Shown here one piece after another: positions 838-59,356 of a stretch of 64,000 nucleotides of DNA. Source of the stretch: Adineta vaga (taxonomy: Eukaryota > Animalia > Rotifera); NCBI GenBank assembly GCA_021613535.1, contig CP075492.1, forward strand, positions 5,022,001 through 5,086,000, read 5' to 3'. Within the stretch, counting starts at the first letter, position 1. Every line of letters begins with the position of its first letter. Both the position numbers and the translations under genes were made by a program. The notes below the pieces were generated by a model. The model worked only from the letters and a program-made list of their open reading frames with translations, did not search any database and was not told the DNA's origin.

Positions 838-3800
838 ATGAAATTGCTGTTGTTCGGGATACTTTCAATGTTTCAACGAAATAATTGCTATTCGAAGTTG
901 ACCCTTCGAAACTAAATCTCTCCTTAGTAAGAATAGTACCAAAGCAATCATGTCTTGTTCTCGTTGCAAGCGTTAACTGTAGTTAAAATTTCACTATTTT
1001 GTGTGAATTATTATAGTAATAGACTTTGGATTCTTTTTATAAATTTCTGTCCGTTTTCCCCTATACTTTGCATCATTTGCAATGTTACGGTTTACATTCT
1101 GTGATCATCACAGTTATAGACATGCTATTTGTTTTTTTTTCAGCTCATGATGAGGAACCTTTGCACTTTTGCGAAGCTGTGACTGATCCTCACATCAAAA
1201 CTTGGCATTCACCAAGTACCTATAGCAGCACCCAACATCATCAAAATTGTTACTTTCCGGGAATGTTTCCAATTGTAAGAAATAATTTTGTTTATTTTCA
1301 AGTGCTAACTAACCAGAAATTTATGTGTGAGGTAAGTATTTTCATACTGACTATTTCATAAATATGCATATCATTGTTGCTTTCAGCTGACCTTAATGTT
1401 TTCTGATGGAACGACAGTAATTCCAATTTGCACGTTGGTGTCACAGAATTTTGAAATTTATGGAGATAGTCACAGATGTGGTGAACATGGTAGGAGAATT
1501 AAATGTGTGGAATAATGCTTATAGTGCTTTTAGGTATCACATGGAATACAACAAGAAGTGGTGCTTTCTATTTTATGACAATATCTTATACAAAAGCACG
1601 CTTCTCCACTACCATCGAACATAACGTAAATATACGGATTTTAGTTTTTCCTTCACCTATATAGGTTGCATAGTACACTTGATCCAAATTCTATCACTCT
1701 AAATAGATTTCATTATACTTATTATATCGTACTCATAGCAATCTAATTCTAAACAAAGTTTAACAAAATATAGAAAGAGAAAAGGTAAATATGCAAGAAT
1801 AAGATTAAATACGTAACAAAAATGAAAACGTTGATAAATATACAATATTCATACTTTCGATCTTTTATACGTTCACCTATATGAACCTCTATTTTTATCT
1901 AGTCATACGCATTGATCGTTTTATATCAATAGAGATGAAAGTAATGTTTCTAATGGAAATTTATTTTGCAGCTAATTTTTAAAAACTTACTGAATTATTC
2001 TGAATTACAAGAGGTCATTTACGAGCACTAAAGTCACAATATTCTTTTACTTTCTCTCTCTCTCTCTCTTCGTGCACATACGGGAAGATAAAACTAATTA
2101 TATTTTGAAAAGTAAAAACATATTGAGGATGTGGGTGAAATTTCACCTAGATGGTTATGTGATAGCTAAGGTTACCAAACTGTCCATTGAACTTCCGTGT
2201 CTATAGGGAAAAGTCGAGAGGGTGTTGGAAACGGAAGGTGATTGAAATTTAATTCAGTTTAGAGCAACTCATTTGATCGATCTTTAGAATATTTATCTAT
2301 TGCTATGCTTTCGTCCTAATCTGGTTACGTTACACGGAAGTAAGGGCGATTCAGAAGTAAGATACTCACCGCCACACAATATTCGTTGAACTATAGTTTT
2401 TTTTATCGTGGAACTATGTGTATTCGCGATAGCTGAAACTTTAACCCGAAGTCTAAGGCTTTTTGAGTGCAAACTGAAGTGAAGATAGCGCTGGAGCGAA
2501 AACTGTTAGGAAAAGGATGGGGTTTGAAGCGGGAACTGTTGGGAAACGGGTGGATTTGGAATACTACATAGTAGAAGTTGTTCTATCTTAGATATGGGTG
2601 GCGAGATATATTGTAGTATAAATGAAAAATTTCAAGAATAACCCTCTGTGCGACCACTGTCGTTTTCTGACATGTGCAGTTTTCAGTCTGCAAGGTTTTT
2701 GACTATCATCGGGTACCTCCGCTAGTCTATATCTATATAATAATTAATTAGCAACCAATATCGAAATTTGTTTCAGTCCTGTATAGTGACTATAATAAAT
2801 CCAAGACATTCAAGACGATAGATTACTGGCGACATAACATGAACCATTCAAGATGCTCAGGTATATCAAAGTATTTCCTAACACTTCTGCGTCTGATTTC
2901 GGAATTTTCATGCGTGGTAGATTAGACTATATCTCTCAAAACCGTTTTACTAGTGTACGATGGACACTAAGTAGAGCTTGCAAAGACACTTGGTGAGTTT
3001 TCATACTTTTCAACATCTAGAAAAATACATCCTAAATTCCGTTGAACGCCTCTAGAGAATTCTCTTTCTGGAAGTCCTGTAAAAAATATGGCTTATACAA
3101 ATATCTTAAATTTCGTTCATTTTATCAGGGTAATTTGAAAAACCCACGTCATTACAATATTTATACATGGTTACCAGCTTCTTTGGCGAGGAACTCAACA
3201 GGTCTTTGTACAAAATTTGATAAAGATTGTCAATTGACGATTCGAACAAGCATATCAGATCTTGAAGACGATAGTATTCAAGATTCAGGACGTACTTTTA
3301 GGCAAAGTCAGGCACAAACCATTTGTCAAACTTATGTGAATGCATACATGAATAAATTACGTCTAGCACCATATCAACGCAGTGTTAGTATGAACAATAG
3401 TATTGCAAGCGTTTTAACTGACTGTGAAGCGGACGTAATTTTTAGTGGAATACCTGAAGTTAGTAATAATAATTAGTGTATTATCTTTAAAGAATTATTT
3501 GTAAATAGGTGGCTCAAAGTAGTGTGAGTGCTCTCATGATGGAACACGTCACGAAGAATGCGGTATCTATCGAATTAATTCAGACTGCAATACAATCAAA
3601 CGGTCAACAAGCTCTTGTGGAGCTAGAAGACGCAATCGAGGACGCTCAAACTGAAGTTGCAGAGATATTTGGTTTCACAACAACTACAAAAGAAGTAGGA
3701 TACTAGAACGCTTGTGAGATATCATCAAGTATATTTCTTTGTTTAGACAACGTCGACAACAACAACAACAACAACAGCAAGTACTACTACAGTTACAACT

Positions 3801-51552: not shown

Positions 51553-52029
51553 TTAGCCTTTTGCACATCGAATTTTATATAAATGATTTTTTACTTGTCC
51601 CGTAGCCTGTGTTCCTGCATATGTTTGTTCATCTGTTTTAAAGGACATCCATCCTGACCATGATTTATATGGAATTTCTTCTAATAGTTTTTGACCAATC
51701 ATCCTTATTCTTTGTTCATCAACCGATGGACCACAGTAGAAAATAATCACACCTTGTGATGCATTACTAGCACGTTGATTAGGACGTCCTGTTGACACTT
51801 TCAGTGAATGAATACCAATCAATCTTCCAGCACGATATTTAGCTTTAGCATATTCCCACATTGTGTCTAATTGAGATAAATCGTAGAATTGCAACCATTT
51901 GCCATCTACCGACGGAGAATTTCTAGCGATTTCTTCATTGTATTCGAATAACCAGAATGAATCTGTAACCTCCGTAGGTTTTGGATTAGAATCGACATAA
52001 AGATCCACATCCATGTTCATGGAACTCAT
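51553..52029 (-). CDS. DUF1917/UPF0696 (Bles03/C11orf68-like) protein, complete copy
   Basis: GKWLQF...D..W, KVST, GVI.FY and FKTD.QT.AG motifs. Intronless, 158 aa. Confidence 0.65.
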   Translation of the reverse strand: MSSMNMDVDLYVDSNPKPTEVTDSFWLFEYNEEIARNSPSVDGKWLQFYDLSQLDTMWEYAKAKYRAGRLIGIHSLKVSTGRPNQRASNASQGVIIFYCGPSVDEQRIRMIGQKLLEEIPYKSWSGWMSFKTDEQTYAGTQATGQVKNHLYKIRCAKG

Positions 52030-52603
52030 TTTTGGTTAATCGAAATGAAATATATCTAAAACGATTCTTACTTATACATTTCGTCATACTTTTTTCACTT
52101 CGGTTGATCAATAGTAATGTGAAAATATATTTTACCTCCACATGTGTGTGAGAGAGAGAAAAGAAAAAGAAATCAATCCGTCTTATTCTACAGACGAGTA
52201 AACACATGTGACGCAGCTATTGATCGATTGCAAATGACGTCGGAATGAAAATATTTTCATTCTCTATTTTGACACGATAATAATTACAAATGACACATTT
52301 ACATAAATATTTTATTCACGCTCACGATTACCTTCTGTTCCTCTACTCATTTCATATGTTTCTTCATTCTTGTAGTTTTCAGTTCGAAAATGTTTTACTC
52401 GTCTTGCAATCCATTCCTGAGCTGTTAATATATGTTCATCATATAGTTCATCTTTACCATCATGTAAAAGACTCTTCATTTGAACATTATTTTGCGGTCG
52501 AGAAAAATAAATAATGCTATAACGATCTGTTGATTCAGTCAAATCAGACGTAGTTATCACACGATGAATATTTGATTTGAGAATACCTCCTGTAGGTTTC
52601 ACC
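51675..52603. repeat. ~930-bp direct duplication, copy 1 (copy 2 at 57692-58634)
   Basis: Near-identical sequence with scattered substitutions and small indels. Covers the oxygenase 3' end and the DUF1917 5' part. Confidence 0.95.
52312..52603 (-). pseudogene. 3' fragment of the 2OG-Fe(II) oxygenase gene
   Basis: TGGILKSNIHRV...RYSIIYFSRP matches the gene at 58344-59356. It is fused to Helitron sequence upstream. Confidence 0.85.
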
Positions 52604-52763
52604 GATTGCTTCCAGTAAGTGTGGGATACATTTTTTTCGAAACAAAGTAGACGTCGACCTTTCCCTGGATGTTGAGACCATTTCTGGAAGGTTTCATTGC
52701 ATTTACTTGTACGGTCTTCAAATGCATAGCGAACAGACAAACATTCTTCTTTATATGTATAGA
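52604..52763 (-). mobile_element. Helitron 5' end fragment (truncated)
   Basis: Minus strand reads A|TCTATACATATAAAGAAGAATGTTTGTCTGTTCGCTATGCATT, matching the 5' end at 57691. Confidence 0.7.
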
Positions 52764-53175
52764 TTTGTATAGAAATAGACACATAACACAAGAAGGAAAG
52801 AAAAAGTCAGTGTCCGGTAACGATGATACACAGATAAATAACCATTACAATACCCAATTAACACTTTAGTCAAAAAATTAGTTCAGTGATCACTTCCTAT
52901 ATAATTAGCTTTACAAAGTTTTTCAACGGATTTGATTGATGTAAATGAAGCAAATTACTAGCTTTTATATAACTAATCACCAAAACAGATATGTCTACAC
53001 AATGCAAGACGACACTAAATCGATTCAATGTCTATTGTTTGTTGAATGAGTGATGATCACATCATTATTATTAATGATTCAAGTTAACTACGTGAACCAT
53101 ATGATAAGATATATAAAAATGTATTAATATCATTCTATTTTAAAATTGAGTTGACTCTCGTAAAGAATTTCTCTT

Positions 53176-56100
53176 TCAAAGCCAAATAATAATCTCTTCA
53201 TTGGCATCAATAACGATTTTAGATGATGAATAATGATTACTTATCGAACGAACATGTTCTGTAAGAAGCGTTAGAAGTATATCACGAGATGTGCGCGGAA
53301 AACTTATATACGTCACACAACATCTATTCACATGGAATATGATAAATTTTGACGAAGAAGATATGAGAGCATCGAAACATGAAAGTATCTGTGTTGCAAG
53401 TGATTCTGGTCGGGTAAATGAGAAACGACGACCACCAAATGAAAGATATTGTAATTGAGGAAAAGCTTTATCTGTCGGTAGTTGTTTGATCAAAGATGCA
53501 GATGGAAAGTTTGTATACGATTCCATAAGAATATTAAGTTGTCGAACAGTTGGCCAAGGTGAAAAAGAATGTTCGAGAAGAAGTTCAATAACAGACCAGT
53601 TTAGGGTTAAACATTCAAGTAGAGAACTACATCGACGAAATTGCTCGAGAATAACACAACGATAATGATTCGGTGTTACAGATCGATAATATGACATTCC
53701 TGATTTGATTGGATTTGAATCAAAACTAAGTTTCAGATGACGTAAAAATGGAAGTAATACATTCCAAGAATTTATGTTCATGTTCATTTCCTAAACAATT
53801 TATATGAATGAAAATGTATCATAGATTTACATTAGATAGTTACTTGTAAATCAAAAAATAAAACAAGTGATTTAACATGTTGAAAGTGAACAAGAGTGGT
53901 ATCGATAGATAAAGGATCACGATCAACTATCCATTCAATATGATTAATACTATTATTAATTGTTGATTGTCCTGCAAACGTATGATTATATACTTGTCTT
54001 TGACTATTTAATAGATATGGAACTGTATACAGTATCATCATTCCATTTATCTCATATTCAACAGTATCATGATTTAAATTAAACCAGTAGAGATCAATAT
54101 TTTCAAGCTTTGTTTCGCCAGGTAGATAGAATAGAAAGCGAAGACAACGTAAACAAATCATAAAATTTGTAATACAATTTCTAAATAGAACAAGTTCATT
54201 TTTATCTGAAAATAAGAACAGAATAAAAAAGTAGTACCATCATCTATAATGGTTGATAATCTATATTATCTAACCTTTAACATTACAATTCACCAAAATT
54301 AATGATTCTAGTTGACACATTGATTTCACATGTTGTATCAATACAATAACATTACTGATGGCTATTTGTCCCAATTGTAATCTGCGTAAATGTGGTAGAT
54401 TGACTCCAGTTATGTTCAAATCTTCAGGACATAATATAGAAGAAGCTCCATTCTTATACCAATTATTTAATTGATATGAAGTATATATTCCCGTTTCCAT
54501 TGTAACATGAAGATCTTCTATATGCGGTAAAGTATTACATTGCATCAATAATGCTAAATCAGATATATGTTGTAACGAGATACGTAAACGAACAGTTTTT
54601 GGAAATGTAAATATTTGATTACAATAAGTAGCGCATTCGGCTAAAGAACTCATCCATTTAAAATATTTGCTATCTAAAACAAGATAAGATTACATTTCAA
54701 AGATTATTAGCGAAAAAATCATAAATATTTTCTTACTCAAGTCGTCTGAATTGTTCTGTAATTGTTTTCGGTAACAGTCAAGAATGTCCTTTAGAAAACG
54801 TCCTTGCAAAAATGTCCTTGGGTTTTAGTCCTCGGGCAAAAGGCCCTTTGGTTTTTTGTCCTTTGGAAAATGTCCTTTGGAAATATTTTCTCATCTATAA
54901 AAGATATCTTTTTTGAACTAATTTATTAAGTTTATGTACGTATGATGTTTTAAACATAGGTGGCAGTGTGTTTTAGACTCAGTACATATAGATATGTACT
55001 CGATCTATATTTAAATGGAATTTTTTCTTTCTCTATAAAGTGAAACAACTTAGAAGAAAAGAAACTGTACGGAATTGGGATTGGTGCTTCACTTACTATA
55101 TAGACGAAAACAAGGAAATCAAACGAAATATCTTCGAAATGGCTGCTGAAGACGTCGTAATGATGGATGATGATTTATCATGGTTATCCTCATCAATATC
55201 AACTGAAAGTTCATTATCATCACCAACATCATCTTCATTAACTGAATATTCATCATCATCGATTGATTTACCGAATGTTACTGTTAACAAGACAATGTCG
55301 AACAAACGAATTATATGATCGGTTCAAAAAAATACAATCACAGTGCAAGGGTTATTTGAAAAACTTTCATTTTTTGTGCCCAATGATTAAATTAATTAAA
55401 TTTTAACCGTTCTTCTCGATTACAACTCATTCTTAATAATTTTAACGAACATTGTCGGGTTCATTTAGAAAGAGAAAGTTTTCGAAAGGACATTTCCAAA
55501 GCACATTTTCCTAAGGACATTTTGTATAGAGGACATTTTATATGAAAGCCATTTTCTGAAGGATCAACATCCAAGGACATTTTCTAAAGGACATTGCTGA
55601 CTGTATTCATTCGTCTCGATATGAACATATCTGAGAATAATTTTAATGATCAGACTTTCGAAATATCATTTCTCGAAAACTCAATATGAGGTTAAACCAA
55701 AATTTGCTATGTACCATGTTGTTTCATCGAGTTCACTATGAAATTCAAATATTTTGTCAAGAAATCATAAATGGATTCGATGAAGATAAATGCAGCAATG
55801 AAATAAATTTATACATTTTTTTTCTGCGAATTCTTAGAACAAATGTAATCCTCAATATATATCATATGTATGATGAACTATCTCGTTTGCACTATTATGA
55901 ACAAAAAACAATTCTTTACCTTCCATCATGATGAATTGCATTGTATGTAAAGAAATACATTCTTCGATGATCTTTTTCATTATCACATAATACCTATCGA
56001 TTCTCTTGAAATAAAACACAATATGACGCAAAATTAATGTGTGTTGACGAATGAGTAGAATAATATTTGTGCGAGCAGACCTATTGAGAAGATCAATATA

Positions 56101-56442
56101 GACGGTGCATTTTCGTAAACGTGGAAGAAAAGATTTCTCATTTTCAAGCCATCGACTAATAATTTCATTTGATATAATTGATTCATTGAGGAGAAGAGAA
56201 GTGATACGATGAGCTATAACTGGATGCTCATATTCAAAATAATGCAACCATTCACCGTACGCTCTAAACGATAATGATGAAAGTAACAAAGCGACTCGAT
56301 TCTGCGCTATTTGAGCTAACAATTGTATGCGGATATTAAGTTTCCACTGAAGCCATGTTGAATTCAGTTCCGACCATGTAAAATAGACGAAAAGTTCTAA
56401 CCACAGCTCATTTGGTAGATCTTCTAATCTGGCAGCAAACAT
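53176..56442 (-). CDS. F-box-like/LRR-like multi-exon gene, possibly disrupted
   Basis: RLEDLPNELWLELFVY (F-box-like), repeated LP.L..L.L segments and ILYTVPY. A TIR element sits inside it at 54775-55603 and the exons around that element read poorly. Confidence 0.6.
54775..55603. mobile_element. Non-autonomous DNA transposon with long TIRs made of AAAATGTCC-type tandem subrepeats
   Basis: Left end CAGTCAAGAATGTCCTTTAGAAAACGTCCTTG matches the reverse complement of the right end, CAGTCAGCAATGTCCTTTAGAAAATGTCCTTG. Contains a Ser-rich ORF remnant. Confidence 0.85.
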
Positions 56443-57040
56443 ATTATAAGAAGAACAAAACCTATATATTATTACATATATATATATATATAGACAATAA
56501 AGAGAGAAAGAGATGACAAAGGCCACAGAGAAATAGAACAAATAAAAGATAATTAACGAATAGAATCGCTCGAATCGTTCAATTCGTTACTTGTTTCATC
56601 CTCTCTCTCTGACTGGCCCTGAATAATAATTGTCCGTCCATGGTATGAATTAATTTTTATTTCTCTATTTATCACCTAAATCTCGAACCATCAAAACAAT
56701 TCGATTATTTCTGTATCTACGTACGTTTATGAAAGAGAGATTTCCTCTTCTCAGGAACCAATTCCAGGGATCATCTAAGCACCATTGAATAGAGAATGGA
56801 ATTGTTAATCAAACGGACACTCACTGAGCTGTAATTGATGTTTAAATTTTGAAAAATATTTAATTCAATATATATGAGATCTGAGGGATAAAGAAATAAT
56901 TACGTTTGATTGACACCAGGAACTTACGAATAAGTGCAGTTCTTGTTGAAAAATATAAACATCACGTTTGTTTGGAAAGATACAAGAATGGTATAATAAA
57001 TGTTGTTTACGAGATTTGAACTAACTCTCTTTAGCTGATA

Positions 57041-57691
57041 CTAGCGGAGATACCCACTGCAAAGAGGACACAATTTACATATTCCATCTGCAACAGCGCT
57101 CTTCTCATCACCCACCGGACCTCGACGTTGGTATTTCCCCGTCGTGTATCAAAAAAATCTCACACCCTCCTTTGCCGCCCTATCTCAGCTATTGTAATCC
57201 TTCAGGTCTTTTTTTTCGAAACTTTTCGCATCTCTTCATTAGTTGTTTCCTACTGGTCTTGTCTCGCATGCATCCGACATACAGCTTTGTGCCTTTCAAA
57301 ATTCACTCCCACCGTCTCGCTGCAACTCCAGTCCCATTCTACACCCACTCTCCCGCTGCGACTCCCACCTCTCGATAGATCTACCTATTCTCAGACGCTT
57401 GCTGCAAGGCATTCTCTAGTTTATAACCTTCACTTCGACTCCATACAGGTAGAGTAGTCATTTCACTCCGGATTCAGTTTTTTCTGAGAACCCAACCAAG
57501 GCAATGCAGTTGTCCATCTTGGATGCAGACACCAACTCCCTCCCCCTCGATGACCATTCTAACCCCATATGAACCTTTCTATAGACCTAGAGAAGCATTG
57601 TGGAAAGTTTGGGAATGTTATCTATTACAGGGACTGAATGCATAGCGAACAGACAAACAGACAAACAAACTTTCTTCTTTATGTATATAGA
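57041..57691 (-). mobile_element. Non-autonomous Helitron (~650 bp)
   Basis: 5' end A|TCTATATACATAAAGAAG...GTTTGTTTGTCTG; 3' end an imperfect hairpin then CCGCTAG|T. The homologous empty site in copy 1 reads GAAGAAA|TTCC. Confidence 0.8.
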
Positions 57692-58052
57692 TTTCTTCTA
57701 ATAGTTTTTGACCAATCATCCTTATTCTTTGTTCATCAACCGATGGACCACAATAGAAAATAATCACACCTTGTGATGCATTACTTGCACGTTGATTAGG
57801 ACGTCCTGTTGACACTTTCAGTGAATGAATACCAATCAATCTTCCAGCACGATATTTAGCTTTAGCATACTCCCACATTGTGTCTAATTGAGATAAATCG
57901 TAGAATTGCAACCATTTGCCATCTACCGACGGAGAATTTCTAGCGATTTCTTCATTGTATTCGAATAACCAGAATGAATCTGTAACTTCTGTAGGTTTTG
58001 GATCAGAATCGACATAAGGATCCACGTCCACGTCCATGTTCATGGAATTCAT
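57692..58052 (-). pseudogene. DUF1917 copy truncated at the Helitron junction
   Basis: Protein matches the complete copy up to QKLLEEI, then reads into element sequence. Confidence 0.85.
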
Positions 58053-58634
58053 TTTTTGTTAATCGACATGAAATATATCTAAAAAGATTGTTACTTATAC
58101 ATTTCGTCATACTTTTTTCACTTCGGTTGATCAATGGTAATGTGAAAATATATTTTATCTCCACATGTATGTGAGAGAGAGGGAGAGAAAAGAAGAAAAA
58201 GAAATCAATCCGTCTTATTCTACAGACGAGTAAACACATGTGACGCAGCTATTGATCGATTGCAAATGACGTCGGAATGAAAATATTTTCATTCTCTATT
58301 TTGACACGATAATAATTACAAATGACACATTTACATAAATATTTTATTCACGCTCACGATTACCTTCTGTTCCTCTACTCATTTCATATGTTTCTTCATT
58401 CTTGTAGTTTTCAGTTCGAAAATGTTTTACTCGTCTTGCAATCCATTCCTGAGCTGTTAATATATGTTCATCATATAGTTCATCTTTACCATCATGTAAA
58501 GACTCTTCATTTGGACATTATTTTGCGGTCGAGAAAAATAAATAATGCTATAACGATCTGTTGATTCAGTCAAATCAGACGTAGTTATCACACGATGAAT
58601 ATTTGATTTGAGAATACCTCCTGTAAGTTTCACC
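57692..58634. repeat. ~940-bp direct duplication, copy 2
   Basis: Matches 51675-52603. Confidence 0.95.
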
Positions 58635-59356
58635 ATGGCATCACCAAGATTGACAATCGCATGTTCAGGTAAAGGTTCAATATCTAACCATTTACCATCC
58701 GACGCTAGTACTTGCAAACCACCCAAACGATTAAATAGAATTGTAACCGATCCGAAGTCAGTATGTGCACCTAACGCTATATCTGTTGAATATTGATCGT
58801 CATTTGGATACATCGTAGATTTAGTAAGTCTCAATTGATCACCACTGGGTTGCATAAGTCTATGCAAATTGGGAAGTGTTTGTGAATTTAATCCCAAGTG
58901 TATTGATAAAATTTCGAGAATGACAAGAATAATTTCATGTGATTTAATCATATAATTTTGTATTATGTTTTTTACGTCGAGAATAGCTTGAGGAAATTTA
59001 GTTCCATCTTGTACTAGTATTTCATCTTTAGAAATATTCCAAAATTCAATCGCATCTGGTGTACCTTTTCTATCGGCATATGTACTTCCAACAGCTTTGT
59101 AACCAAAATAAACACCATTTTTACCATCCATTGCATATTCGTTCTTAGTATCTAATGGTAATGCAAAGACTTTTTCTGCGAGTGTAAACATGGAACATGG
59201 ATCGAGTTGATCACCTAATTTCAGATAGAAAAATCCCAATTTGGTTGAAGCATCAAAGAGTTTCTTGATTTCTGTTGGATTTCTTTCAATAAGTCGGTTA
59301 TAGTCGATAATTACTAATGATTTATCAGATACTAATTCAGTAGCTATCGAGGTCAT
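58344..59356 (-). CDS. IPNS-like Fe(II)/2-oxoglutarate oxygenase (DIOX_N + 2OG-FeII_Oxy), fungal-like
   Basis: GFFYL, HTDFGSVT, NLGD, HRV and RYS motifs. Intronless. An A3 versus A4 homopolymer frameshift near 58500; the intact C-terminus is visible in the duplicate. Confidence 0.85.

Follow-up and report, generated by a model that had tools for sequence, protein, structure and literature searches.

A 5,087-bp block of DNA (block B) lies between two direct copies of host gene sequence in the bdelloid rotifer Adineta vaga. On balance, we favour the view that block B originated at another locus and arrived by Helitron read-through, followed by microhomology-primed resolution. The block begins with a complete Helitron, for which the empty target site survives. 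It ends in a second Helitron, cut off at a microhomology to the target, and has no counterpart at the syntenic locus of the outgroup Adineta ricciae. Coordinates refer to the window, a 64,000-nucleotide stretch of contig CP075492.1 (5,022,001 to 5,086,000).

Architecture of the locus

A preliminary description, made from the DNA letters, had placed Helitron ends, a captured gene and a flanking duplication at 51675-58634. That structure is borne out, as assembled. Direct copies A (51674-52603) and A' (57691-58634) flank block B (52604-57690). Alignment of A with A' confirms the duplication of about 930 bp: there are 920 identities in 956 columns, 17 gap columns and about 1.8% substitutions. The indels are in a GA/GT microsatellite, plus one of 6 bp. 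On the minus strand, each copy contains the last 97 or so codons of an oxygenase gene, about 280 bp of intergenic DNA and roughly the first 120 codons of a DUF1917-like gene. Copy A has the oxygenase 3' end from 52603 to 52312, then intergenic DNA, then the DUF1917-like 5' part from 52029 to 51674, and runs unbroken into the remainder of that gene. Copy A', annotated from 57692 to 58634 on the same strand, has the DUF1917-like 5' part cut at an A|T site. Its oxygenase 3' end carries a 1-bp deletion and directly adjoins the oxygenase 5' part. We also considered the 930-bp repeats as LTRs. This was ruled out because the repeats are host gene sequence, syntenic with A. ricciae.

Block B contains, in minus strand order, a 651-bp Helitron (Hel1), 4.3 kb of unique DNA with a predicted 4-exon gene, and the first 160 bp of another Helitron (Hel2). 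As first described, the DNA following the Hel1 CTAG does not continue DUF1917; it is unrelated to the target gene. The unique DNA between this CTAG and the start codon of the predicted gene (56443-57040, minus strand) is presumed to be donor flank and promoter. The unique DNA 3' of the gene (52764-53175, minus strand), for which the genome search gave no other match, is likewise presumed donor flank.

Helitron termini and the two junctions

Hel1 (57041-57691, minus strand) is a non-autonomous TC...CTAG Helitron. The TC start (57691-57690) is immediately 3' of GAAGAAA, and the A'/B junction (57691/57692) falls at the first base of the element. The same A|T is intact in copy A. Here, the uninterrupted site GAAGAAA|TTCC, at 51674/51673, is the empty site for the 5' junction. 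Hence, the initial observation of a Helitron starting exactly at A|T, with an empty site in the other copy, was correct. At its 3' end, Hel1 has CTAG at 57044-57041, followed by T. The adjacent hairpin (57046-57061) is mismatched, as had been noticed. Its stem reads AGTGG...CCGCT, compared with AGCGG-GTATCT-CCGCT, then AG, in the family. With this C to T change, the hairpin energy is -1.3 kcal/mol, compared with -4.5 kcal/mol for a consensus-type copy. Note that the mutation could postdate the event. All nine aligned Hel1 copies have an A just before the 5' end and a T just after the 3' end, and a hairpin precedes the 3' terminus; the terminus is CTAG in eight and CTTG in one. The TCTATAT... 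start is seen in Hel1 and eight other copies.

Hel2 contributes only its 5' end (52604-52763, minus strand). The element starts at 52763, with TC after A, and its unique part extends to 52604, in line with the truncation after about 160 bp originally described. Hel2 and seven other copies of this second family begin TCTATAT..., and TC follows A in most of them.

The ends also behave as repetitive Helitron termini genome-wide. The 5' terminus motif has 117 matches, compared with 5 for the control, and the 3' terminus motif has 92, compared with 2. Within the window, there are two matches per terminal motif where 0.01 or 0 are expected. Together with the copy alignments, these counts support the assignment of the ends, made in the preliminary description, to Helitron termini at A|T sites. 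Hel1 and Hel2 each represent a genuine Helitron family. The Hel1 3' terminus also closes a copy encoding Rep and PIF1 helicase (C3:700177-705000, minus strand), with ORFs matching PF14214 (Rep) and PF05970/PF21530 (PIF1 helicase); GGGTACCTCCGCTAG is found about 370 bp farther on. At C1:~40 kb, a Rep ORF has a Hel2-type 5' region 1.9 kb upstream. Upstream of the Rep ORF at C3:700-709 kb, a search for the 5' terminus motif gave no match. For the C1:40 kb copy, the 5' tip is degraded and no 3' terminus was found within 16 kb. We found no Rep/helicase-encoding copy with both termini intact.

The second junction of block B (52603/52604) differs from the first. On the target, it maps 930 bp upstream of the insertion site, and not to the same A|T site. 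Hel2 is cut precisely where a microhomology, GGTGAAAC (52596-52603, minus strand), begins. This sequence is shared with Hel2 family copies. The preliminary description had suggested looking for such a match, and the result was positive: GGTGAAAC(T) sits in the Hel2 family at the exact point of the break, an identity of 8-9 bp. The longer form, GGTGAAACT, is present at the junction position in Hel2 family copies L028 and L031, and the intact oxygenase also has GGTGAAACT, running from 58634 to 58626. The probability of sharing 8-9 bp by chance is about 4^-8 per junction.

The target genes and the outgroup

The oxygenase (58457-59356, minus strand) is a 2OG-Fe(II) enzyme of the fungal type, with Pfam domains DIOX_N (PF14226, 2.5e-10) and 2OG-FeII_Oxy (PF03171, 9.4e-18). 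As assembled, its ORF encodes 299 aa, compared with 331-343 aa for the orthologues. This is the only 5'-complete copy, and the 1-bp deletion lies in one of its A-runs, near 58498. Beyond about residue 286 the reading frame is shifted, which costs the product some 55 conserved C-terminal residues. The correct C-terminal frame is kept only in the copy A fragment. The Bles03/DUF1917-like gene (51553-52029, minus strand), which bears the empty A|T site, is complete and encodes 158 aa. Its match to PF08939 is sub-threshold (E = 0.028; 14.8 bits, cut-off 23.1). The 'DUF1917' label of the preliminary description is based on this below-cut-off match. An exact-protein look-up of the gene product, made to find an independent assembly, gave no match, in a collection from which records of this or very near genomes may be missing. 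The earlier statement that one full copy of each target gene remained is correct for the DUF1917-like gene. It fails for the oxygenase, because of the 1-bp frameshift in the assembled sequence.

In A. ricciae, the syntenic order is TPR-oxygenase-kinase-DUF1917, with single copies, and the DUF1917-like gene is 68% identical to its A. ricciae neighbour gene. In the outgroup comparison proposed at the outset, the A. ricciae locus thus has single target genes and no B-like block. DNA and protein searches of the A. vaga genome found no second copy of either the oxygenase or the DUF1917-like gene. There is, therefore, no ohnologous empty site.

The cargo gene and the search for a donor

For the cargo gene, exons were searched one by one, and a script checked that GT-AG combinations give an open frame. 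The open model (53176-56442, minus strand) has four exons (56442-55920, 54673-54275, 54205-53844 and 53790-53176) and would encode about 632 aa. The gene is apparently intact. A MITE/foldback-like insert occupies part of intron 1 (54770-55600), with inverted arms at 54797-54844 and 55548-55595 and GGACATTTT sub-repeats. The paralogue on C2 is without this insert.

The predicted protein has an N-terminal F-box-like motif, LEDLPNELWLELF, and a possible LRR-like beta-alpha periodicity. The family is small and orphan; a search of 1.84 billion representatives turned up only 10 relatives for exon 1. The name 'F-box', given in the preliminary description, derives solely from the LEDLPNELWLELF motif and found no backing in Pfam, PDB or fold comparisons. 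Exon 1 and five relatives had no Pfam match at E <= 10, a PDB profile search returned nothing relevant, and Foldseek with the AlphaFold model gave no match at E <= 0.001. That model has pLDDT < 50 over its first 60 residues, and its strands at residues 82-85, 111-115, 140-145 and 169-174 alternate with helices; in RNI-like leucine-rich repeat proteins, the beta-alpha units measure about 28-29 residues. Weak Foldseek matches were to RanGAP, ribonuclease inhibitor and NLRC4 (E 0.4-0.7). Pfam analysis of exon 2 gave a weak LRR_At5g56370 match (E = 0.021).

The donor locus that the preliminary description called for was not found in this assembly. Searches of the full genome with the whole block, the Hel1-flank junction region and cargo exon 4 returned self-matches and paralogues only, and the region 52764-57040 matched only itself. 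The nearest cargo paralogue (C2:15308529-15311104) is 80-83% identical in DNA and 65% identical in protein, and no Helitron sequence was found at its locus. A further paralogue, at C3:3.69 Mb, has 49% protein identity. Since A and A' have diverged by only about 2%, a retained donor should still be recognisable. This counts against the transduction reading.

A model for the origin of block B

Our favoured model begins at a donor locus where a 0.65-kb non-autonomous Hel1 would lie about 600 bp upstream of the 4-exon gene, with Hel2 about 400 bp downstream of the gene and in the same orientation. Rolling-circle transposition would start from the Hel1 5' end and fail to stop at the CTAG terminus. 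Read-through would then cross the gene and continue for about 170 nt into Hel2. The transposase would link the 5' TC to the A|T site within the DUF1917-like gene. For the 3' end, joining would proceed without transposase, by pairing of GGTGAAAC(T) with its match in the oxygenase, 930 bp upstream of the insertion site. The pairing partner might be the same duplex, the sister chromatid or the homologue. Synthesis from this 3' end would recopy the 930 bp and continue into the rest of the DUF1917-like gene, giving A'-B-A. The polarity fits: upstream pairing of a free 3' end, followed by extension, yields a duplication, whereas downstream pairing would yield a deletion. We infer the order of these steps, their occurrence in a single event and the role of the weak hairpin as cause of the bypass. 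Loss of the hairpin increases read-through in Helraiser assays (PMC4778049). Overall, the interpretation offered in the preliminary description stands with respect to the termini, the unrelated DNA, the microhomology and the outgroup; it is not supported for the donor, the full oxygenase copy or the F-box.

An identical final structure could arise in two steps, which we consider unlikely. Here, a composite Helitron, built from the 5' end of Hel1, the gene and a full-length Hel2 that still has its 3' terminus, would insert in canonical fashion into the A|T site of one homologue. Break-induced or template-switch repair would later pass from about position 170 of Hel2 to GGTGAAAC in the oxygenase of the insertion-free homologue, replacing the rest of Hel2 and creating the duplication. 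Such a route calls on nothing beyond canonical transposition, using an upstream 5' end and a downstream 3' end (exemplars are in PMC4778049), and microhomology-mediated repair. The 2% or so divergence of A and A' would then be allelic. Nevertheless, two independent events are needed at one locus, and we found no copy of the composite element elsewhere in the genome. Fork stalling without any transposase (FoSTeS/MMBIR) is very improbable. A stalled fork would switch to the donor at GGTGAAAC, copy 5.1 kb and return. Although a duplication plus an insertion is a typical MMBIR result, and one junction has microhomology, the other falls exactly at the first nucleotide of a Helitron at A|T, with no microhomology there beyond the T. 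The chance of such placement is roughly 1 in several thousand.

The degree of divergence between A and A', and their indels, would also permit an older age for the duplication. We also considered an older tandem duplication of the oxygenase-DUF1917 pair, in which a later Helitron-associated insertion deleted the DNA from the A|T site of the first DUF1917 gene to GGTGAAAC of the second oxygenase gene. This is topologically compatible. However, it requires an extra event, the genes are single-copy in A. ricciae and a third copy or remnant is absent from the genome, so we regard it as very improbable. Least probable of all is an assembly artefact, either a chimeric join or a haplotype kept in tandem. 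The A/A' difference is about the haplotype level and the frameshift sits in a homopolymer. Yet both junctions are biologically marked, one by a transposon end at A|T and the other by an 8-9-bp microhomology predicted by the family consensus. Moreover, long reads easily span a 5-kb spacer, and any read-supported junction between block B and the oxygenase would imply duplication.

Returning to Helitron read-through with microhomology-primed resolution, a more specific form of it can be put forward tentatively. The locus may be the fossil of an aborted, one-ended Helitron transposition, where the 5' end was transferred, the 3' end was never cleaved and the host completed the joining by microhomology-primed synthesis, duplicating 930 bp. 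If so, it would be natural evidence that integration of eukaryotic Helitrons can be sequential, 5' end first, and not only via a closed circle. It would also mean that a complete gene, with its promoter, can be relocated in this way.

Relation to known systems

The closest parallel is end bypass by Helraiser and Helibat elements (Grabundzija et al. 2016, PMC4778049). In both situations, the canonical 5' terminus is at A|T, an internal CTAG with a weakened hairpin is bypassed, and downstream host DNA, including promoter and gene, is carried along. The new 3' end of the published transductions shares the target site of the 5' end, and any overlap there amounts to about 2 nt at most (PMC4778049). 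By contrast, the 3' junction described here is 930 bp upstream, involves 8-9 bp of microhomology and leaves the interval duplicated. Furthermore, a whole multi-exon gene would have been moved, rather than a fragment. Canonical end-bypass transduction has both junctions at one A|T site, and a donor with Helitron and flank; at this locus, the junctions are at different sites and the donor was not found.

One-ended transposition by the bacterial IS91 family also starts at one end, misses the terminator and stops arbitrarily in flanking DNA. Those elements differ in being bacterial and plasmid-borne, and termination is still by transposase. We know of no long target duplication reported for IS91-family one-ended transposition. 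A microhomology-guided switch between transposon and unrelated host DNA is likewise seen for Pack-TIR elements, by filler-DNA/FoSTeS and gap filling (Tan et al. 2021, PMC8277862). In the Pack-TIR case, it is a resident transposon that gains host DNA through the switch, whereas here the free end of an incoming Helitron strand would be tied to the target. In L1 3' transduction, a weak terminator lets flanking DNA travel with the element, 5' junctions can be microhomology-mediated and long target duplications occasionally arise. As proposed for our locus, the element's enzyme attaches one end, and host repair attaches the other at a microhomology. L1 differs because it moves via RNA and has the reversed polarity. 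We conclude that known mechanisms had an unusual outcome here, of which the locus is a clean natural example, and that no new kind of element is involved. Each component mechanism is already described, and this is a single locus.

Helitron gene capture is usually inferred from fragments in old, multi-copy elements, where the junctions no longer reveal the capture route. Here, one insertion retains the 5' end at A|T with its empty site, the bypassed terminus with a weak hairpin, 4.3 kb of cargo with an apparently intact gene, the beginning of a second Helitron and the non-canonical 3' junction. Since all of these informative parts are kept together, the locus documents how read-through and host repair can combine. 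Through a Helitron event, two host genes can be disrupted and partly duplicated while a third is relocated. In the setting of a bdelloid rotifer, this bears on how double-strand-break repair shapes transposon outcomes.

Anatomy of the duplicated locus

Genome-wide searches covered a 100.8-Mb assembly of six contigs, in which the window is C3:5022001-5086000. The base composition (~31% GC) is consistent with a bdelloid rotifer of the genus Adineta. Repeat searching and pairwise BLAST identified two direct copies, A (51674-52603) and A' (57691-58634), with 920/956 identities and 17 gap columns. The copies differ by ~17 substitutions, a 6-bp indel, changes in GA/GT microsatellite length and a 1-bp A-run difference, and are identical through the central 300 bp. 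The spacer between them, block B, is 5,087 bp long (52604-57690). On the minus strand, each copy contains the last ~97 codons of a 2OG-Fe(II) oxygenase gene and, after an intergenic stretch of ~280 bp, the first ~120 codons of a DUF1917-like gene whose product is 158 aa long. Upstream of A', the oxygenase 5' part is unbroken to 59356. Downstream of A, the remainder of the small gene runs to 51553. Hence, the order is oxygenase 5' part, A', B, A, DUF1917 3' part, as the preliminary description claimed. What it observed at the locus is confirmed; the core of its interpretation is supported, with details corrected below.

Helitron sequences at both ends of the block

The last part of B on the plus strand is Hel1 (57041-57691, minus strand), a 651-bp repeat with dozens of genomic copies. 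Its termini were defined by aligning nine copies with their flanks. In all nine, the 5' end (TCTATAT...) lies immediately 3' of an A and the 3' end (...CCTCTTTGCAGCGGGTATCTCCGCTAG; CTTG variant in one) immediately 5' of a T. Sequences outside the termini are unrelated. Genome-wide counts are 117 for the 5' terminus motif, compared with 5 for its control, and 92 for the 3' motif, compared with 2. Furthermore, at C3:700177-705000, on the contig carrying the window, ORFs for Helitron_like_N/Rep and PIF1 helicase are followed after ~370 bp by a Hel1-type 3' terminus. We conclude that the Hel1 family are Helitrons by each defining feature tested. Note that the 3' hairpin has a 5-bp stem, AGCGG/CCGCT, with AGTGG in the window copy. 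Predicted stability is -1.3 kcal/mol for this copy and -4.5 kcal/mol for a consensus-type copy.

At the other end of B, a second family, Hel2, is represented by its first 160 bp (52763 to 52604, minus strand). Hel2 copies begin with TC after an A, extend well beyond position 160 and have only the first ~45 bp in common with Hel1. Elsewhere, a ~200-bp Hel2-type 5' piece runs directly into a Hel1-type 5' end at L035 and L036 (C1:16936531-16936651 and 16956738-16956858; mirror copies 20 kb apart) and at L033 (C2:1643700), which suggests nested or tandem Helitron starts. Another Helitron 3' terminus of the same superfamily (GGGTACCTCCGCTAG) lies at window positions 2711-2725 (plus strand).

Junction sequences

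The A'|B junction reads ...TTAGAAGAAA|TCTATATACAT... on the minus strand. The corresponding site in copy A is ...TTAGAAGAAA|TTCCATATAAA..., running on as the small-gene open reading frame. Hence, the first base of Hel1 sits in an A|T dinucleotide preserved empty 6 kb away. On the 3' side of the Hel1 CTAG, the sequence TATCAGCT... is not the continuation of the DUF1917-like gene. The target 8 bases just before Hel1 (AGAAGAAA, 57692-57699, minus strand) recur in its own 5' end (TCTATATACATAAAGAAGAAAG, 57670-57677). This is probably chance, since other Hel1 copies have no such flank.

The B|A junction reads ...GGAAGCAATC GGTGAAAC CTACAGGAGG... in the window, ...GGAAGCAATC GGTGAAAC TGACCAATAGG... 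in Hel2 family members L028 and L031, and ...GCCAT GGTGAAAC TTACAGGAGG... in intact oxygenase sequence. Thus, the microhomology predicted for the second Helitron family, GGTGAAAC, is common to both parents exactly at the switch point. The following T is probably shared too. An 8-bp overlap is expected by chance at ~1 in 65,000 random junctions. Two predicted chimeric ORFs span the junctions on the minus strand. One (52312-52791, 159 aa) would fuse Hel2-derived codons to the oxygenase C-terminus; the other (57618-58052, 144 aa) would join the DUF1917-like N-terminus to 24 Helitron-derived codons.

Target genes

The oxygenase matches PF14226 and PF03171. The sole Pfam match of the 158-aa gene is Bles03/DUF1917, sub-threshold at E = 0.028. 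One full copy of each gene had been claimed; as assembled, this fails for the oxygenase. The copy with the 5' part has AAA (58490-58505, deletion near 58498) where copy A has AAAA (52460-52475). The missing base puts the downstream codons out of frame and costs ~55 conserved C-terminal residues, leaving no intact oxygenase ORF in the assembly. Accordingly, the 5'-complete copy aligns to orthologues only to residue 286 of ~342, and the copy A fragment aligns along all its last 94 residues. The deletion could be genuine or an assembly error in the homopolymer.

The nearest protein relatives belong to Adineta ricciae, A. steineri, Rotaria and Didymodactylos, again consistent with an Adineta bdelloid. 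Beyond rotifers, those nearest to the oxygenase (58457-59356; relatives P0033, P0112, P0041-P0120) are fungal (Penicillium/Aspergillus, 44-47% identity), and the sciarid fly proteins are unexpectedly similar (Bradysia coprophila 64%, Pseudolycoriella hygida 69%), a distribution suggestive of horizontal acquisition.

The cargo gene

Between the Hel1 and Hel2 pieces lie 4,277 bp with no second occurrence in a search of the full genome. They carry a four-exon gene on the minus strand. GT-AG combinations were checked for an open frame, and at least one passes, with ~632 codons (56442-55920, 54673-54275, 54205-53844 and 53790-53176). Similarity was searched exon by exon. A foldback/MITE-like insert (54770-55600) accounts for the ~1.2-kb length of intron 1; its inverted arms (54797-54844 and 55548-55595) are imperfect, and it includes GGACATTTT sub-repeats. 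A relative of this insert is at C1:14127106-14127694 (72% identity). A paralogue at C2:15308529-15311104 is 80-83% identical to the cargo gene across exons and introns; it lacks the insert, and no Helitron sequence was found nearby. A third, weaker relative is at C3:3.69 Mb. No donor locus for B was found in the assembly.

The preliminary description called B an F-box cassette. The N-terminus does have an F-box-like motif, LEDLPNELWLELF. However, Pfam gave no F-box match for this N-terminus or five relatives, a PDB profile search gave nothing relevant, and the AlphaFold model is unreliable across the segment. The rest of the model has beta-alpha periodicity, weakly resembling RNI-type leucine-rich repeats. 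The exon 1 family has 10 relatives among 1.84 billion representatives. Hence, "F-box cassette" is a label rather than a finding.

Origin of the arrangement

On A. ricciae CAJNOJ010000162.1, a TPR gene, the oxygenase, a kinase, the DUF1917-like gene and the next gene lie in one orientation. Each shared gene is 73-78% similar to the window in DNA, in the same order. The oxygenase and DUF1917-like genes are single-copy there and nothing matches B, which indicates that the duplication and B are derived in the A. vaga lineage. The cargo gene, whose presence here in outgroups would count against capture, is absent from the A. ricciae locus. In that species the protein kinase gene (L051:9513-10613) separates the two target genes; in A. 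vaga they are ~280 bp apart, without it.

The simplest account is Helitron end bypass, with the 3' side completed by the host. Transposition would initiate at the Hel1 5' end and miss the weak Hel1 terminator, so that the displaced strand extends through the cargo gene into Hel2. The transposase would link the 5' end to the A|T site. The free 3' end would then anneal, via GGTGAAAC(T), to the oxygenase 930 bp upstream and prime synthesis. Since this pairing lies upstream of the insertion point, extension would recopy the interval, giving A'-B-A with the right polarity. In Helraiser experiments, read-through occurs and rises on hairpin loss (PMC4778049). For other elements, microhomology template switching near the transposon is documented; for Helitrons it is cited (PMC8277862).

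A two-step history is also tenable: canonical insertion of a Hel1-gene-Hel2 composite, then a template switch into the homologue, would yield the same product and explain the ~2% A/A' divergence as allelic. Transposase-free MMBIR is unlikely, since the Helitron sequence at one junction begins precisely with its first base, at A|T. Both junctions bear biological signatures, making assembly error unlikely. Had the gene pair been tandem-duplicated earlier, insertion with deletion could follow, but one more event is then needed, and A. ricciae offers no support for it.

In open-access text, we found no description of a Helitron insertion that is joined canonically at its 5' end and through microhomology at its 3' end, and that leaves a long duplication of the target. 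The locus is a single case in which known processes led to a non-canonical outcome, and it can be read with unusual clarity. Its interest is moderate, mainly for those studying Helitron mechanism and bdelloid genome dynamics.
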